NCBI GenBank assembly: GCA_964270895.1
Contig: OZ185438.1
Strand: one strand, 5' to 3'
DNA: 64,000 nt
DNA from: Podarcis filfolensis
Taxonomy: Eukaryota
The notes beneath the pieces were generated by a model that saw nothing but the letters and a program-made list of their open reading frames with translations, was not told the origin of the DNA and ran no database searches. Positions 44,401 to 54,857 of the stretch are shown piece by piece. The stretch's first letter is position 1. Each line of letters opens with the position of its first letter. The position numbers and the translations under genes were made by a program.

Positions 44401-45010
44401 TGTCAAGGGGCTGTCAGGAAGGCCAGTTCATGCACAGGTCAGGAAGAGGACTCAAGACTCGAAGTGCAATTAACTTTTATTCACAAAAATAGCAACACAA
44501 CAGAGTACATCTAGGCTATTCTGTCCCAGCTGAAGATGTTGCTGGGACTGGCATCTAGTCCTCCTTCCCTCTCTAGTCCTCTCCTTCTGGACACCTCTCA
44601 AGCAGCCATAAACTCCAGGGAGAGGGACGGATCCCCCTCTGGGCTTGTCTGGCCAGTTGCTCAGCAACATGCAAGGCTCTTCGTGATCTAGGTGTCAATG
44701 GAGGAGGAGAGTAAGCTGTAGAGGGATTGTCCAGTTGCTGTGAAACTGAGGCAGCCTCTGACTCTATGTCAGAGTCTGCACTCACATAGAGACCCTCAGC
44801 ACCCAGCTCTGTCCTCGAACGGCTCTTTATTTCTGACCGCCCATGTTCACTCTAACCTTTTGCTTCTATCATCTCCCATCTTGTCCAATCTATACTCGGG
44901 TCCTCAGTGCCCCACCACCATTGTCCTGGGTCTTCTTTCCCTGTGTCATCCCTGGGGGGCTCTTGGGCTAGTGTCACCCAGCACTCTTCATCATCCAGCC
45001 AGTCCCTGAC
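44401..45010 (-). mobile_element. Solo LTR (~610 bp)
   Basis: TGTCA...TGACA termini, TSD atata/atgta (4 of 5), AATAAA on the minus strand near 44475-44480. Confidence 0.65.
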
Positions 45011-45317
45011 AATGTACTAGGAGAAAGTAAATACAAAAATGCATTAATCAATGAAAATAATGTACTAAAGGCAATAAAATTATGGTAAACTGCTTGCAAA
45101 AATGAACATGTGTGTGGATTTTCATGAGGAGTAAAAAAAAATCTCAAACCCCAGTGGAAAAAGGAAAAGCAGTGGAAGCTTGTCCTTTCTCAATGGAGAC
45201 ACTGGAAGACAGTTAGGACATAATTATGGAGACCTAAGCCATAAAAGTAGGAAGGAATGATAAGCTGCATCAAAGATGTCATGACTGAATAGAGGCCCAT
45301 AGATTTGGCAAATATTT

Positions 45318-46002
45318 GTGTGTTGAGACCTTTAAACAACTTTATTGATTTACAGCAAATGAATGGTTGCATAGGCTCTGGTTCGACTAGCTCCCTGCAC
45401 TGTTGGAGGGAGCACTGACCCAGGGCACCAGCATAGGTCAGCCTAGGGTGAACACCTGGATAAGCGGAAAGCCGGGAACAAGCTATCTCCGCCACTGAAA
45501 TGTCCCCCTGGACTCAGGCACGGGCACAACCCCCTCTCAGGGGTTGACCAAACCATTGAGTCCCTGGATTCCTTTAATGGAATACCCTTCACATAGGGAT
45601 GGCGAGAGCGTTCTCCCATCCCTATCACCTGAACCAGAGCCTATCCACAACCTTACAAGTTGTGACGATTTGCTACGTGGCAGGCAAAACCCAAATGGCA
45701 GCAGCCAATCAGCCAAGGGGGGAAAATTCCTGCCGTGTCCCTGTCCCAACAACAGATGACACAAGACAGCATAGCAAGGTCAAGCGCAAAGCCCTAAAAG
45801 TAGGGAGAGGTGGGCAAGTGTTCTGAATGCACACACCAAAAGAGGAAGCTCTGGGTCACGTGCATGGGTATATATAGGTCCCTTGATCCGTTTAGCCTGC
45901 GTCCCATTGGCCTGATTGAACCCTGCATCAAGGGACCTACCAATTGGGTGTTAGGTTGCCAGGTCCCACCGCAACACGTGCCCTCTTTAAAGGAGGACCC
46001 GA
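45318..46002 (-). mobile_element. Non-coding 'A-B' relic of the Ngaro-type YR element (685 bp)
   Basis: 45340-45640 is the reverse complement of 49350-49660. The 5' part has CCAAT motifs and TATATATA (45869-45876). Ends GTGTGTT / GGACCCGA, both flanked by ttt. Confidence 0.8.
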
Positions 46003-47617
46003 TTTGCAGACATCTGAGTGTAGGCAAAGAGGCACTCCTACAATACGGTGGAAATACTACATCATACGTGATTCCCAGTGATAAAAGAGAGAGGAGAGAG
46101 AGATCCTGCACCCTAAATTGCCTTTAGCCAACTCTAATCTTTCACTGCCTCTGTCTAATCCAAATTGCAAACTACTGTTTCTTCACATATGGAAGCACCC
46201 CTCCCACAGATCAGACTCGCCCCTTAAAATGGAGCGTGTTTTACCATCTCCAAGCTCTTATGGCTACCACCTTCAAATATTAACAATATCTTCAATTATC
46301 TAGAAATAATCTCCTGACAATAAGCTTCCACAAAGACATTAGCCAATCGTTATGGGCTGTTATGTGCCTTTCACGGGAATCCTTTGCCAGCAGCTATAAC
46401 ACTGTACTTATGTGGGAAACATTATTACATGATGTTCAAAAGATATATGAACCTAGAACAACATGCCATGCTCTTTGATCTCATCTTCCCCTGCACATTA
46501 ATAAAAATGTATTATCTCTGCCTGCCCCCCCTGCCCCCGGCCTCCTTGTCTTCTGTTTCCAGAATTTGCTTCATCTTTCTTCCCTGGGTGAGGCAAGTAC
46601 ACTCACGTTAGAGGAGAAAAAGCCATATACCCAAAATACCATGGATCCAACAGTTCAGCTGACAATTCCATGGGAAATAAAGAGAAATATATGGGAAAGA
46701 GAATCAAAGGTTGCTAAGAAAATTGTTTGAACAGCAAGAAAACTTAGGAAAAATAGCTCAATTTATGACTGCTAGCATGAGTGAACCATAGTGTGATAAA
46801 TCCAGGTATCTACATGCCGTCTTTCCCTCACCATTTATTCCTCTGATTTTTGCCACCATCTTGAGGGAATCAAGAGTCCCCCCCCACACACACTTTGGCT
46901 CTCCGAGTTCAGAGAGCAAGGCTGGCTGGGGGAGGCAGTGTAGTGTTGTGCAGGCTTGCCGAAGCCAGGCCGGGCCAAGCAGGCAAGCAAGTGCCTTGGC
47001 TGCCCAGCTGAGGGGCCTCCAGGTGCCAAGCTGGCATTTGTTCACCCCCCACCAAGGGAGGAGAGGAGAAGCAGAAGGAGAGTCTTCCTGCCGGTGCTGC
47101 CTCCTAGCATATGCCTCCCGAGGCACTTGCTTCACCCAGCCTAGTGGCAGGACCAGCCCTACACGGCCTAGTGGGCTGAGCTAGTCTAGTTTACTATTGA
47201 AAAAATGCCTTTTAAGTTGTTTAACATCATAGCTAACAGCCATGCAGGTTACATTCTTGGTGTGTAAACTGCATTTGAGAGCTGAATGACTGTAACTTGA
47301 TTTCAGAAAGAGAAAATGACAATAAATCACATAAATCAAAGCTTGATTGATATTAGTATGCAGCACAGTGTTTCAGCAGTACATCAACTTCATGCAGCCC
47401 ATTTTCAAACATATTTATTGTAAGTATTCTTTCTTCCTGTGGAAGGGAGTGGTCCCTCTGTTTCTCAAAGGAAATATGAACCTTTTGATCTGGGAAAACA
47501 TCTTGTTCACTATGGTCCCATCTGCATCTAAAACAGCACCATACCACTTATAAATAGTCATGGTTTCCCACAAAGAATTCTGGCAATGGTGGTTTGTTAT
47601 GAGTGCTAAAAGTAGTT

Positions 47618-47980
47618 AAAAAGGTAAAGGTACCCCTGCCCGTACGGGCCAGTCGTGACCGACTCTAGGGTTGTGCGCTCATCTCACTCAAGAGGCTGGG
47701 AGCCGGCGCCGTCCGCAGACACTTCCGGGTCACGTGGCCAGCGTGACGAAGCTGCACTGGTGAGCCAGCACCAGTGCCGCACACGGAAACGCCGTTTACC
47801 TTCCCGCTATAAAGCAGTACCTATTTATCTACTTGCACTTAAGGGTGCTTTCGAACTGCTAGGTGGGCAGGAGCTGGGACCGAACGACGGGAGCTCACCC
47901 CGCCGCGGGGATTCGAACCGGTGACCTTACGATCAGCAAGTCCTAGGCACTGAGGTTTTACCCACAGTGCCACCCGCGTC
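47618..47980 (-). mobile_element. Sauria (POM-type) SINE, full length, young
   Basis: CpG-rich intact copy; 12-bp TSD ctaaaagtagtt (47606-47617 / 47981-47992). Confidence 0.95.
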
Positions 47981-48025
47981 CTAAAAGTAGTTGGGAGACC
48001 TCTATTCCCCTCTAGACCTCTAGCT

Positions 48026-48715
48026 GTGATTCCTAGAGTGGTTTCACAATCAATTCATCTTTATTCTAGAGACCCTTGTGCAAAGTTTGTAGTGCACAAG
48101 GCTCTCAAGGGTTGGGCCAGGTTGCAGCCACTGAAGTCGCCGGTCACATTTGACATTTTATTCTTGATGCACAGCAAGTTAAGACTTGTCTGCTGGTCCA
48201 TTTATGAGGTGAGACTCTTTTCAGCAGCTTTTTCAATAGCATTTTTTGTTGCACTGCGTGTTGCCGAAGTGGTGCTGGAGTCAGCACAGGGAAGGGCCCC
48301 CAGGGGCTTGCTTTTGCAGGATGTTCAGCTTTCTGACACTGAGCTGGTTCTCACTATTCGAAATCCTAAAACAGACCAGTTGGGCAGAGGTGCCTTGATG
48401 CAGCTGCCTGCCACTGGTAAGCCCGGCCCTTGTCCAGTCAAAGATGCCAAGAGATATTTGTCACTTCGTCCACCTGGGGATGGTCCTTTCCTGGTTCACG
48501 AGGATGGGTCCCTGTTAAAGAGGCATCAATTTGCTGCAGTAATGCATAAGGTGCTTTCAGTGTGTGGCCTGCTGGCCAGTGATTTTGCACCTCATTCTTT
48601 CCGTATTGGGGCAGCCACTACTGCCGCGCCCTGGGGCCTGTCCATTGACAGGATCAAGGATCTGGGCTGCTGGAAGTCTGACGCATACAGGGGTTTTGTT
48701 AGGATGCGGCGCTGA
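48026..48715 (+). CDS. Tyrosine recombinase (DIRS/Ngaro type), N-terminally truncated
   Basis: AFFVALRVAE (R), RNPKTDQ (K), HSFRIGAAT (HxxR), LGCW, SDAY (Y). The first ~11 codons probably lie outside the element. Confidence 0.9.
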   Translation: MIPRVVSQSIHLYSRDPCAKFVVHKALKGWARLQPLKSPVTFDILFLMHSKLRLVCWSIYEVRLFSAAFSIAFFVALRVAEVVLESAQGRAPRGLLLQDVQLSDTELVLTIRNPKTDQLGRGALMQLPATGKPGPCPVKDAKRYLSLRPPGDGPFLVHEDGSLLKRHQFAAVMHKVLSVCGLLASDFAPHSFRIGAATTAAPWGLSIDRIKDLGCWKSDAYRGFVRMRR

Positions 48716-49739
48716 GGTGTAGTTATTAATGTTGTTCTGTTCATTCCTAGGTCCGTCTGCCCTTTACATCTGGATAGTTGGGCACAGCATTGTCCACTGG
48801 GCCGGCAGGAGGGCAGCAGAGTCTGGATTCAGATGCAGGCTCAGACTCCCCAACCACGTGAGCGTCTCCTGGGTATCCAGATGAGGAATGGGTCGGGAGG
48901 AGTTTCTCCTGACGGTGCGGGCGAAGGTGTCTGCGGCAGGCATGCCTGCGGCGATGGTGGTGCAGCTGGGCGAGAACAATTTGCCGAAAGCACCCAGATT
49001 GAGCCTGTGGACCCGCATGCAGGAGGACTTGGAAAAGTTGAAAGCAGCTCTTCCTGGACTCAAAATTTTTTGGTCGCAGCGACATGGGTGGCGAGGTAGG
49101 CAATGCCCAGCTGCCACCGAGAGGGCCAGGAAGCGTGCCCAGAGCACTGTGGCCAAGAAGGTTCTGGCCTTGGGCAGGATGGTGATCTGTCACCTGGGCA
49201 TTACCTTCTGTGATTCGTCCCTTTACAGGCTTGATGGGGTTCATCTGTCTGTGACTGGGAATGATTTGTGGCTGGCCTCAGTGTCAGCGGGGTTAAGGAA
49301 TTGGTTACAGGTGTGAGTGGTTGGCGGCCAGCGTGGGGCTCGTGTGGCGGATAGGCACTGTTCATGTGATAGGGATGGAAGAGTGGTCTCACCATCCCTA
49401 TGTGAAGGGTATTCCGTTAAAGGAATCCAGGGACTCAACTGGTTTGGTCAACCCCTGAGAGGGGGTTGTGCCCATGCCTGAGTCCAGGGGAGCATCTGGA
49501 CTCATAGTCTGTTCCTGGCTTTTCGCCTACCTCAGGTGTTCACCCTTGCTGACTTATGCTGCTGCCCTGCGTCAGCGCTGCCTGCAAGGGTGCAGGGAGC
49601 TACTCGAACCAGAGCATATGCAACCACTCACTTTTCTGTAATCAATAAAGGTGTGGCCTAAATTCTGCCAAAAGCCAAAACTAAAATTTGAGTCAAATGT
49701 GTCTTTATTTAGGAGGGAGGTCTCTGGGTCTGAACACGC
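48060..49739 (+). mobile_element. 5'-truncated Ngaro-type tyrosine-recombinase retrotransposon
   Basis: YR ORF, then SGNH ORF, then a ~420-bp terminal repeat with AATAAA (49644-49649) ending GAACACGC; gag and RT absent; left end approximate. Confidence 0.85.
48729..49316 (+). pseudogene. SGNH/GDSL hydrolase-like ORF with one in-frame stop
   Basis: In one frame: IWIVGHS (block I), RGM (block II), QLGENN (block III), DGVHLS (block V); TGA at 48882-48884, plausibly CGA>TGA. Confidence 0.8.
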
Positions 49740-50417
49740 AAATAAGAGAACAAAGAAGAGAGAATAATGTTAACTGTATCCAAAGGATACAAAGCCAAGT
49801 TTCAGTAAAAGCAAACATTCATGTTTTCCCCAAATCACTAGAAAATAAGTAACACCCCCCCACACACAATTAAAGTTGAGGTGGGGAGGGAAAATCAGTT
49901 CAAGCTATTGGTTATCATGTGAAAGATCATATTCTATTCAGCATTGCAGAATTACAGTAATTCAGATTTTGGAACTGTTATCTAGTTCAATTGTTTCCAT
50001 TATTTTATGCATGCCATTTTATTTTCTTCACACTGTAGTGTATCTGGAATGTTAATTTCATTAAAATGTAGAGTTAATTATTACTAATCCACAGTTTGCT
50101 TCCGGAGTCCGCCGTTATCTGTGGATAAGTTAATAGCTGCCACTACACATGATCTGATGTGAACTGAAGTGATGTAAAGCATATTTAAGGGGTGGGCTGT
50201 GTGTGAACAAATTTGATCAGAAATAGATGGCTGTCATATTCACTATCTGAAAATGTATTTCATATCACATTTTCCATCTCCACCAGAAAGCTATACATCT
50301 GAGATAATGAAAGCTCATGGTGTCTCACATTAGACTAAATGAAACAAAACACATGTTAAAGTGGAGCATACTCAAAACACTGTTCTTCCTTACAGGTAAA
50401 CAAAGAGTCTAACTCAC

Positions 50418-50549
50418 CTTGCTCCGTCAGGCGTGGAAATTCAAGGGGATCCTTTCCTACCCAGCTCCAGTGGAGGCTGGTGGAAATTAGTCCTGCTGAG
50501 GCCCCCAGGAGGCCACATGGGAAGAGCCTAGGAGGTCCCCATCCTTCTC
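50418..50549 (-). other. Candidate exon (132 nt, symmetric phase 1)
   Basis: Acceptor ctgtttatttttctaag, donor AAG|gtgagt; only one frame open: EGWGPPRLFPCGLLGASAGLISTSLHWSWVGKDPLEFPRLTEQ. Confidence 0.4.
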
Positions 50550-50774
50550 CTTAGAAAAATAAACAGTGGACACTTGTCAAAAACTACCCAGTGTCAAAGT
50601 GGACAGTTGTCAAAAGCTACCCAGCATCTAAAGTATCTTACATTGGTTCAGAAAGGGCCTCTGCCACTGCAGTTGCTTCTCTGTGGGAGAAATTTGTCTG
50701 CCCCCACCTGTTCATCCCCTATTCTCTGCCTTGTGGCTCAAAAATGAAATAAAAACGAATCTCCCCCCCCCCCC

Positions 50775-50777
<3 letters not shown>

Positions 50778-50805
<28 letters not shown>
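50778..50805. repeat. (CA)n microsatellite
   Basis: Direct reading. Confidence 0.9.
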
Positions 50806-51264
50806 TCCAGGGAGGGAATGAACAACACAGACTCTGAGCAACACCCAGAAGCATGGCTTTGATAGGCTTATGGTAGGTGGTCCTAGGCCTGCCCCCACTC
50901 CGCTATGTCTGTGTTTCCCCTCCATGAGTCAGGGGTGGGCCCCACAAAGGGGCCTTCCATGCCCAGGTCACCTGAGCTACTTTCTCCATTTGCAATAATA
51001 TGTTATTCCAACTTGCCCTTAAGCAAAAGGTCACCTGAGAGGGATCCAACATGGTGCCACCCAGATATTTTTGGACTACAAATCTTATTACCCCTGGCCA
51101 TTGTTCAGAAGATATTCAGGCGAGCTCCAGCCTTAGGTATAAAGTCTGTGTCGGATGAGTTTTCACTCCCCTAAAAATACATGTTCTCAACTTGGGAATG
51201 ATGCAGCTCTGCAATTTCCTAGAGAAGTTGGATGTGGCCACAGTCAGATTCATGCCATTCACAG

Positions 51265-51375
51265 TCATTCATGCCATTAGTCGATAGACTGGACCATTGT
51301 AACACAGTCTATGTGGAGCTGTCTTTCAAAAGTGACCACAAATGTCAGTGGGTTCAAAATCAGACTGCTGTTTGG
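51265..51375 (+). mobile_element. Old L2 fragment
   Basis: LVDRLDHCNTVYVEL...QWVQNQTA resembles L2 SRLDYCN...LQLVQNAAA. Confidence 0.5.
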
Positions 51376-53607
51376 GACATAATAGAAGGTGAATATATAT
51401 CCACTCTTATTTACCTGCATTGGTCCATGTGAGAAGGACCTCTTCTTTTGTGCCGCCCATACACACTGGACAGTGACGGACTTTGACCTTTCAATTCTCA
51501 GTGGCGACACCAAAATTCAGCACCCCTCGCATCTTGCCCTCCATTGTTCATCACTGTTGCAGCCCCCTGTGGCACCCTCTCAGCTGGGTGCCCACTGCAG
51601 ATAAACTAGTTGTGCTTCCCTAAATCCACCTCTGACACTAGAAAATCTTCCCAAAGGAGCCTCATTTGGCACCAGCATTGTTTAATTTTCAACTTCTGAT
51701 AAAAACTTGACTTTTTAGATTCATGACTTCTGCTTTGTGATATATTTTCTATCTTTTGAAGGCTGATGTTCTTGTGCTGTTATACTTCTGGTATCCCCTC
51801 CCCTCTGTTGCCTTTTGCCACCTTTATGACTGATGGTTTTACATGACTTATACAATGTTGTTAGCTGCTTTGATTTGCTTTCCATGAAAAGCAGGGTACA
51901 AATTATTAAAATAAGTAATCATATATGCCAACTGTGCCGGCTTAGAAGATAAATATTTCCCTTCCAGTCTAGCAGGTGTTTACAGTGCACTGGTGTCAGA
52001 TTAAAGCATGGTGCACAGGCTGCCCTGGTGCTTACAAAGACATGTACAGATCCCCTTAACAGACACATTGTTAGTGAAAAACACATGAGCAATCCTATTT
52101 GAATAAGGTTGAATCTTTGTAATTAGGAATGCAAACACATGCATTTACCAGAGGGAACCAGGATTGTAATTCTAAGTACAGTTTGAAAACAGAAAGCCGT
52201 AGATATCAAAGCAGATGCTTGAACAGCGTAGCATCATGAGTTTACCTAATAAGGAATTCTGACAGACTAATTTCAGTTAATTACAGAAGTCATTATTTAC
52301 AGAGATGTACTTACTGTAAAAGATTGCTTGGGCACTGCTGAACTGGATGACACAAATCACAGGCATCCAATTTGCAGGAAGGCTTGTTATGGTGTATGCC
52401 TATTAATTTTCTTGTTATTATTTTTGCACATTTTTTAAAAAAGCTTGCTTAAGGGTCCCATATTAAGCTGTCAATATTCATTCAGATCCACATTGCTTCA
52501 TCCACTTTTCTCCCAAGCAGAATAATTCAAACAGTTGCAAAAATACATTTTCCCCTTGATTTATTTACAAGACATCTACTAATTGCAACACTCTGACATG
52601 AAAATCTTAGTGATGACTGGAGACAGGTGAATAGGCCCCAAGCACTGAGGATGGGGCTTGGAGATTTGGAGGGACCCAGCTCAGACTGCAAGCCCATTAT
52701 GATGAAGGAAAAACCTGAGGCTAAATCAGAGGTCATATTTAAAGATAAAGGCCTGTTTCCCTGTTTTTCCATAGGGGTGTCCAGATCTGAGATGCCATGG
52801 GCCAGAACCAGAACAAACAACAGGTAAGCAAAAAGCAAGCAGCTGGCTGAAGCTCTGCTCTTGACAGCAAGAGAGAGATGTCCCATTCACATGTTGTTCA
52901 TGTGAAAGAGGCTCCATACATTATATGCATTCATTTACTGCAGATATATCCTGCCTTTCCTCACAAAGGAATCCAGGGCAGCAAATACACCAGTCTTAAA
53001 AATAATACACTTTTAAATCAATCACATATTCTCACAGCTAACCACTGCAAGGTTGCCAGAAACAGTAACTTTCAGCCATCAAATGCCTGGGTAAGGAGGA
53101 ATGTTTTCTAAATTCACCATGAGAGAAGGCATTCCACAGATGGCCAATCTTCCCATGTTTTGCCCCAATCTTCTCCCTCCTGGCAAGCACTGCAGTGTGG
53201 GGGGAAGCTGGGAGAGCATCACTACTAGCAGAGTAGCTAAAGTGCCACTAGGAAGTCAACATCATGTGCAATACTGACTATTTTCTTGAAATTGAAACAA
53301 TGTCCAATGTCAAAAAGCTTTTACTTGCAGAACATAAAGCTAAAGAAGAATGTATGCAAAGTGTTTACATGCTTCTCCAAGCACGGGCTTAGTTCTTCTT
53401 AGTTGAAGATCACAGCTTCTTCCTGAAACATTCATACAAACTGAGTCTTTCTCTGTTTCCAGTACTTGTACGCAGCCTTCTGCACATGACTCAGCTTGGC
53501 CATGCAGTTCCTTCTGAGAAGTTTCCACTTTCTCCTTCCAGCAGACTTCTGCTGACTGCTTCTTTGGGAGAACATCAACTTATGCATTTCTTTCTGTCAC
53601 ATGCATT

Positions 53608-54417
53608 GCGTGTTGAGTCCCACAATGCCACCCCCCAAAAAATTCACACTTCACACATCAATTTTTGTTCAAGGTTTTTGGCATAAATTTTGGCCACAAC
53701 TTTATTCAAAATACAAAAAATGTGAGTGGTTGCTTAGGCATTGGTTATGACTATCTGTCCTTGCCCTCAGGGACAGAGCTGGCCTTCCGGACACCAACGG
53801 AAGCCAGCGTGGGAAACAAGTATTGGGTGAGAAAATGAAGCTGGGCCTCAGTCCCTCACTTCTCACCCTCATGTTCCTTTGGGGCTTGCACGGCCCAAGT
53901 CCGACTCCGGGGACAAGGACGCCAAGAATGGCAAGCCCCTGGATTCCTTTAACGGAATTCCCTTTCCGCACCACCATTGGAGGGGTAGGCACTTACCCCT
54001 CCAAGAACCAATTTAACCAATGCCTAACCGCCAACCTTACAAGTTGTGACGATTTGCTACACAGTAGGCAAAAACCAAATGGCACCAGCCAATCAGCCAG
54101 ATGGCAAAATTCCTACCAGGCCCCTGACCCAAGGCAGACGACCCCATGACAGGCATAGCAAGGTCAAGCGATCAAGAAACCCCCCTAATTAAAGGGAGGG
54201 AGGGCGGGTGATCCGATGCAAACCGGCCAAGAGGACGCCCACGTTTGGGCGTCCTATATTTAAGGACTCTGACCCCTCCTCCAAATTAGCAACAATCCAA
54301 ATCCCCAACAACCTAATTTAACCACTTAAAGGCTTGGGCTCTCCCAAATCTGCCCAGTCATGCAGGGTGGCCTGTTCCCCCAACCGCAACACGTGCTCTC
54401 TGTTATGGAGAACACGC
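53608..54417 (-). mobile_element. Non-coding 'A-B' relic of the Ngaro-type YR element (810 bp), both termini intact
   Basis: Perfect 7-bp inverted ends GCGTGTT (53608-53614) / AACACGC (54411-54417), flanks att / ttt, no TSD; homologous to 45318-46002 and 49320-49739. Confidence 0.82.
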
Positions 54418-54857
54418 TTTCCCACAACAACATCAGCAGTCCGCTCCTCTATTGCATTTAGAGAGTTATCCGACACTGTTTCTTCTTCAGTGCTCATGGA
54501 GATGCAACCATTACGGTCAAGTCAGTCACACACAAAACAAAATGGAGACTATAATAAGATACCTCCCATGTGACCAGAGTTAACCAAACACACAAGAGTT
54601 ACTGGAGAACATTCCAAAATTAAACACACAGTAATGCATTTAAGCATTCCCAATTTCAGTAAGTTATATCACTATACTTCACAATCACGAGCCACTACTG
54701 GCCATATATAGGGAATACAGAAATGAGAAAGTCCAAGTTTGTTGAGTTCACCATTTACAGATTGTGGAGATACTGGAGACTAACACCACATTAGTTCTAC
54801 AGTTCTTCACTTTCCTTTAGGTTCTCATCACTCTTGCCCACCTTGTCCTACACTAGC

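Follow-up and report, generated by a model that had tools for sequence, protein, structure and literature searches.

Remnant of a probable Ngaro-like retrotransposon with a tyrosine recombinase gene and an SGNH esterase gene in the lizard Podarcis filfolensis

The window studied here is a stretch of 64,000 nucleotides (64 kb) from the lacertid lizard Podarcis filfolensis (contig OZ185438.1 of assembly GCA_964270895.1), and its positions ~47993-49739 are very probably the dead 3′ portion of a Ngaro-like retrotransposon, a tyrosine-recombinase element of the order DIRS. The remnant contains the C-terminal three quarters of a tyrosine recombinase (YR) gene, an SGNH esterase gene, and a structured 3′ terminal repeat. 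Searching with full-length relatives by tblastn, we found a single copy in the window. An earlier note, made from the letters of this DNA alone, had described a Ngaro-type element of which the window displays most parts. The assignment is borne out by our analysis, in which the YR nests among elements that are linked to reverse transcriptase (RT) and bear SGNH genes, next to a Xenopus tropicalis protein with both YR and SGNH. The claim of near completeness has to be withdrawn: no gag, RT, or RNase H was found in the whole 64 kb, which was searched for RT-like segments, and no split direct repeat was found in the remnant. What the window holds is an ordinary fossil, the 5′-truncated and catalytically dead tail of a Ngaro-like element.

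The recombinase and esterase genes

A search with the YR open reading frame (ORF) gave 306 relatives at E ≤ 1e-3. Those most similar to it are 58-65% identical and belong to lacertid lizards (Podarcis muralis, Lacerta agilis, and unnamed Logan/ENA contigs), followed by Anolis sagrei, frogs, newts, abalone, and a sea star; NCBI labels relatives as 'integrase/recombinase xerD homolog' or 'uncharacterized protein LOC...'. The tblastn match begins at residue ~65-110 of the relatives, leaving the window YR short of ~65-110 residues at its N-terminus. Taken alone, the ORF matches the Pfam domain Phage_integrase at E=0.037, below threshold, and single-sequence searches of PDB with the window ORFs returned nothing. 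The YR profile aligns with Cre across the active site R-K-H-R-W-Y, with HSFRIGAA opposite HSARVGAA of Cre, G-x-W opposite W315, and x-Y-[IV]-R opposite Y324.

The earlier note held that the YR keeps its recognizable catalytic positions. This is correct for Arg78, Lys115, His190, Arg193, and Trp216, all of which are retained, and incorrect for the nucleophile, whose column contains Phe224 in the window and Tyr in at least 90% of the other 87 sequences of the tree alignment. The residue previously taken as the catalytic Tyr is probably Tyr221, which lies three residues before Phe224 in a column that alternates between Tyr and Phe among the relatives. Two more highly conserved columns are altered in the window copy (R37K and R215C), and intact lacertid relatives have 0-2 deviations at such columns. 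The gene therefore encodes a tyrosine recombinase of the type found in eukaryotic retroelements, defective in this copy through Phe224 and the N-terminal loss.

The esterase frame starts 14 bases after the YR ORF and aligns end to end with intact Podarcis SGNH ORFs of 213-245 residues; several Podarcis gene models (P0019, P0020, and P0076) join the YR to the GDSL domain. The two pieces of the broken frame served as separate search queries; only in building the alignment and the tree was the frame read through, with X in place of the stop. All residues of the SGNH set are present (Ser20, Gly53, Asn83, Asp169, and His172), distributed over block I (G18-H-S20), block II (G53), block III (G81-E-N83), and block V (D169-x-x-H172), and from its sequence the Ngaro esterase is predicted to be a Ser-Asp-His SGNH enzyme. 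The earlier description of an ORF with all its blocks and a single stop is thus accurate as to the residues and the one TGA, and incomplete in that the frame also differs from its relatives by a 3-residue gap and, at columns with ≥85% conservation, by three changes.

A profile search over 1.84 billion representatives gave 1741 SGNH relatives, 974 of them at E ≤ 1e-10, and the nearest come from lacertids and geckos. The Pfam domain Lipase_GDSL_2 was matched in 41 of 49 SGNH relatives, and the window frame alone matched it at E=0.12, below threshold. An AlphaFold2 model of an intact Podarcis homolog has a predicted local distance difference test score (pLDDT) of 94, and with this model Foldseek retrieved TesA and PAF-AH at probability 1.0 and matched sialate O-acetylesterases as well. 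We conclude that the YR and esterase frames are not chance ORFs.

Reverse transcriptase linkage and placement among YR retroelements

RT linkage was tested on the clade of the window YR. Scanning metagenome contigs with the YR alignment yielded 80 loci that are 27-41% identical, and in practically all of those with upstream sequence a stop-free frame of ~600 residues matching the RT profile lies directly 5′ of the YR, on the same strand and with a slight overlap. The sole exception is a decayed piece, L007. Each of the nine RT ORFs submitted to Pfam matched RVT_1, eight of them with scores above the gathering threshold and L018 with one slightly under it, and RNase H-type matches were found in two of these nine frames. 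About 20 of the 80 loci, mostly the nearest relatives, have an SGNH ORF directly 3′ of the YR, and several have a further ORF of ~500 residues upstream of the RT. The relatives are accordingly laid out as a gag-like ORF, a ~600-residue RT/RNase H ORF, the YR, and the SGNH hydrolase. Because the RT/RNase H ORF ends where the YR begins, there is no room for a methyltransferase domain, and this layout matches that of published Ngaro elements (PMC9210276). A scan of viral contigs gave no relatives.

A YR tree built from 88 sequences unites the window YR with the lacertid proteins in a clade with a support of 99, which sits inside a tetrapod clade (support 99) together with Anolis, newts, frogs, and P0237, the X. 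tropicalis protein with YR and SGNH. The tetrapod clade in turn lies within the group that contains nearly all RT+YR+SGNH loci, and a separate clade of 31 sequences has RT and YR without SGNH. A frog gene model (P0210) joins RT to an SGNH domain of the same subclade. Custom hidden Markov models detected YR in 12 of 155 SGNH-containing proteins and RT in one of the 155, Pfam detected neither RT nor YR in 24 long SGNH-containing proteins, and no RT remnant was seen in 120 YR matches.

[quoted passage not shown] These two families and DrNgaro1 of zebrafish have the same gene order as the window, YR then SGNH hydrolase ORF, and it is with the X. tropicalis YR+SGNH protein that the window YR clusters. 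The statement in the earlier note that an extra hydrolase ORF is known from Ngaro elements agrees with the literature (PMC9210276, PMC7192593), where it is published for fish and amphibians. The window copy differs from these elements in its lacertid host and in being a remnant without gag, RT, or the A1...B1-A2-B2 repeats, with one B-type repeat only. Compared with what characterizes Ngaro, the extra SGNH ORF of the vertebrate elements is present after the YR; RT/RNase H upstream of the YR is found in the clade and is missing from the remnant itself, a 5′-truncated copy; and the A1...B1-A2-B2 split direct repeats are not seen, the 5′ end with the A1 site being absent. Ngaro has been said to be absent from lizards (PMC4746887), and reptiles have been listed among its hosts (PMC9210276). 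The remnant is a new host record for a known kind of element, and lacertid copies are already public as unnamed gene models.

DIRS1-like and PAT-like elements are also YR retroelements, with recombinases of the same superfamily, but they have a methyltransferase-like domain and no hydrolase (PMC3266345, PMC7192593), the methyltransferase being assigned to DIRS1/PAT (PMC7192593, PMC6681497, PMC3266345). DIRS1-like elements have in addition long inverted terminal repeats and an internal complementary region (PMC3266345, PMC7192593). We rejected a DIRS1-like identity on the lack of such repeats in the remnant and in two short related elements of the window (relics 1 and 2, Table 1), together with the lack of space for a methyltransferase in the relatives.

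Following published models of YR retroelements, a complete element would have its gag-like and RT/RNase H ORFs upstream of the YR, its RNA would be reverse-transcribed, its repeats would allow the cDNA to be completed and closed into a circle, and the YR would recombine this circle into the genome without target duplication. The remnant is incapable of such a cycle: gag and RT are missing, the YR has lost both its N-terminal domain and its nucleophile Tyr, and the esterase frame is interrupted. The earlier note had called the family recently functional. The phrase suits the family, since intact ORFs occur in Podarcis gene models, and does not suit this copy, which is not nearly intact.

Borders, terminal repeat, and alternative histories

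Table 1. Features of the remnant and its surroundings (window positions).
Feature	Position	Strand	Remarks
Relic 1, short related element	45318-46005	-	5′ part missing from the remnant plus the same 3′ repeat
Left 12-bp target-site duplication of SINE	47606-47617	.	CTAAAAGTAGTT; same 12 bases at 47981-47992
tRNA-derived Sauria-type SINE, foreign to the element	47618-47980	-	Two further window copies; T-arm-like motif, ACCTTT-type tail
Right 12-bp SINE target-site duplication	47981-47992	.	Perfect repeat of left copy
YR remnant	48026-48715	+	229-residue ORF; homology begins ~47993-48044
Phe224 at catalytic tyrosine column	48695-48697	+	Cre Tyr324 equivalent, from alignment of YRs with Cre
SGNH/GDSL esterase ORF (Ngaro ORF4 type)	48729-49316	+	One in-frame stop and a 3-residue in-frame gap
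In-frame TGA	48882-48884	+	Sole stop of the esterase frame; one codon 5′ of block II glycine
3′ non-coding B-type repeat	49317-49739	+	Ends GAACACGC (49732-49739); similarity to two window relics
Relic 2, short related element, more diverged	53606-54420	-	Same two parts, same terminus

The 5′ breakpoint of the remnant coincides exactly with the insertion point of a short interspersed nuclear element (SINE). ARAGORN called no tRNA in it, its contig depth is 10^4-10^5 times single copy, and RNA reads are heavy on it on both strands. Since the SINE is flanked by a perfect target duplication, the DNA left of 47606 was once contiguous with that from 47993 onward. No YR or RT homology was found upstream of the SINE, where the DNA is unrelated, and the element was therefore already 5′-truncated within the YR, independently of the SINE; the 5′ junction of the remnant does not represent a true end of the element.

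At the other end, the 3′ repeat is from ~49345 onward 85% identical to 45646-45336 on the minus strand, and parts of it match 53964-53606. The terminus at 49739 is common to both related short elements. These relics, of which there are two in the 64-kb window, are 0.7-0.8 kb long and join a 5′ part to the 3′ repeat; they share the 5′ part that the remnant is missing, and they have short 8-bp inverted termini. A single B-type repeat follows the esterase in the remnant. The earlier note's structured repeat is confirmed: 49345-49660 (+) folds with a z-score of -3.9 versus shuffled sequence, and among the three copies in the window 15 of the 67 consensus pairs are maintained by compensatory changes. 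A search of 45000-54600 against Rfam yielded no meaningful match and no family for the structured repeat. The search for split repeats in short-read metagenome contigs gave no repeats, and such contigs are uninformative for this purpose.

Abundance was read from contig depth summed over two DNA runs, which is not a copy number. By this measure the coding part stands at ~9-80 times the flanks, increasing about ninefold across 48108-49313, between the YR and the 3′ end of the esterase ORF, and the 3′ repeat stands at 500-4500 times single copy, ~100 times the coding part. A 3′-biased gradient of this kind is typical of long interspersed nuclear elements (LINEs) and would not be expected of elements that integrate as closed circles; a large number of 5′-truncated or internally deleted copies may account for it. 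The abundance of the 3′ repeat and the two relics exceed what occasional solo relics would give, which suggests a non-autonomous family mobilized in trans. At numerous positions the majority of contigs depart from the window sequence, and the remnant therefore carries private changes. In two sister-species RNA runs, of which ~12% was read, a few reads fell on the 3′ repeat and none on the coding part, the latter being weak evidence of silence. Sister-species DNA runs contain one third to half of the stretch's sampled words, and their flank contigs extend for 18-22 bases into the SINE on one side and into the end of the element on the other, short of the 31 bases required for bridging. This suggests a shared, older insertion.

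Several observations weigh against assigning the whole of ~47993-49739 to an RT-bearing Ngaro-like element. The B1/B2 direct repeat is absent in 48900-49760 and from the relics, and the 5′ part of the relics was not found after the esterase. The 3′ repeat could belong to a separate short family, because it is ~100 times more abundant than the coding part. With respect to the RT, the best 120 matches of a word search with the RT profile were all RTs of invertebrates or metagenomes, with no lizard entry among them, and no RT was seen adjoining the YR+SGNH family in the readable lizard sequences. The linkage to RT is therefore drawn from relatives that are 27-41% identical and from the frog RT-SGNH gene model.

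The best surviving alternative, which we consider unlikely, is that the fragment derives from an internally deleted Ngaro derivative that lacked RT, used the proteins of complete copies, and was later truncated further. The depth rises steadily from ~9 to ~80 times single copy between the YR and the esterase end and then jumps at the 3′ repeat, and most genomic family members therefore lack the 5′ parts. However, these depths do not represent copy numbers, and with the 5′ side of the remnant absent both histories leave the same sequence. Far less probable is a DNA-only tyrosine-recombinase transposon of the Crypton type that carried an esterase and did without reverse transcription. Such an element would fit the lack of RT in the window and in all fetched lizard YR or SGNH gene models, as well as the 8-bp inverted termini of the related short elements, and Cryptons have the same broad type of YR and no target-site duplication. 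But Ngaro ORFs are separate, so that gene models without RT are expected; wherever a related locus extends far enough upstream, the YR is directly preceded by an RT ORF, the one decayed piece excepted; the window YR is nested in the RT-linked group with strong support; and one gene model fuses RT to the frog representative of the same SGNH subclade. As Cryptons have no RT and the relatives of the window YR are linked to one, we rejected a Crypton identity. That the remnant is a decayed pair of host genes, a domesticated recombinase and an esterase, can be practically dismissed: NCBI annotates relatives as genes and some gecko SGNH relatives do appear to be host genes, but the family is multi-copy in the source genome, each lacertid genome has many paralogous models, the terminus of the remnant is common to dispersed short elements, there are no introns, and the copy is broken.

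The esterase module in retrotransposons and host-like genes

When the SGNH profile was compared with solved structures, the best match was PDB 4c1b, the esterase of ZfL2-1 ORF1p from a zebrafish LINE of the L2/CR1 clade (PMC3905857), at E=4e-14, with the next at 1e-5. The match spans almost the whole domain, both esterases are borne by retrotransposons, and both have the same Ser/Gly/Asn/Asp-x-x-His set. The link that the earlier note had drawn to the ORF1 esterases of non-LTR elements is thereby substantiated. The two differ in position, as the ORF1p of the LINE, located at the 5′ end of the element, carries its esterase fused C-terminally to a coiled coil, whereas the window esterase is a separate, last ORF after the YR. 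Neither a coiled coil nor a LINE ORF2 was found near it, unlike what a ZfL2-1-type ORF1p would have. The PAF-AH Ib catalytic subunits and E. coli TesA/TAP have the fold and catalytic geometry in common with it, but their profile similarity is remote (E ~1e-5) and they have no link to mobile elements.

The ZfL2-1 esterase hydrolyzes esters slowly and binds acidic phospholipids and liposomes, its authors proposed a Gag-like targeting to membranes, and they listed esterases in CR1, RTEX, and Penelope, with Ngaro unmentioned (PMC3905857). By analogy, the lipid- or membrane-related role that the earlier note had suggested would be the best available model for the Ngaro hydrolase: the enzyme would most likely bind acyl or phospholipid groups or cleave them, and in this way tie the particle to membranes in assembly or transport.

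We also observed relatives of the Ngaro-type SGNH domain in gene models that resemble host genes. Tandem arrays of 2-6 such domains occur in large, multi-isoform models of five gecko species in four genera (P0124, P0131, P0142, P0144, P0151, and P0188) and of two clupeid fishes (P0159 and P0183). In an unrooted tree, which does not give the direction of transfer, the gecko domains fall into a single clade, and individual domains of one genus have their counterparts in the others. All of the gecko and clupeid array domains lack the catalytic His, and most lack the Asn and Gly too; the full catalytic set is kept in every transposon-type SGNH copy examined. The arrays may represent exaptation as non-catalytic repeats.

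Two other kinds of model were observed. Models of ~400 residues from Podarcis (P0129, P0134), Zootoca (P0130, P0132), and Paroedura (P0139) combine a disordered, basic N-terminal half with a catalytically complete SGNH domain, and they interleave with YR-linked copies in the tree. Their N-terminal halves have no match in Pfam or in the window, and the models may derive from the element by splicing or represent a further carrier of the module. In P0128 (Zootoca, 'ZNF638-like'), P0145 (Eublepharis, 'ZNF318-like'), P0180, and P0227, a transposon-type SGNH domain stands at the C-terminal end of an ordinary host protein, and these fusions are either exonization or annotation chimeras.

A wider proposal, which we put forward tentatively and with the balance of probability somewhat against it, is that the Ngaro hydrolase is the esterase module of CR1/L2-type LINE ORF1p, exchanged between unrelated classes of retrotransposon, that its Ser-Asp-His set is kept only while the module is borne by a transposon, and that hosts have taken it over at least twice as tandem, dead SGNH repeats. 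If true, this would be a second Oskar-like non-catalytic SGNH domain, derived from a transposon.

The remnant documents Ngaro-like elements with a hydrolase ORF in lacertids, a group of elements detailed only for fish, frogs, and sea urchins. The fragment alone adds little, and the observation of the gecko and clupeid arrays may be worth more. The closeness of the Ngaro hydrolase to the ZfL2-1 ORF1p esterase, which alone among retrotransposon esterases has both a solved structure and lipid-binding data, offers a concrete model in which the hydrolase would bind charged membranes and slowly hydrolyze acyl esters. Together with the loss of the catalytic set in what appear to be gecko and clupeid host genes, its retention in the transposon copies argues that catalysis matters to the element.

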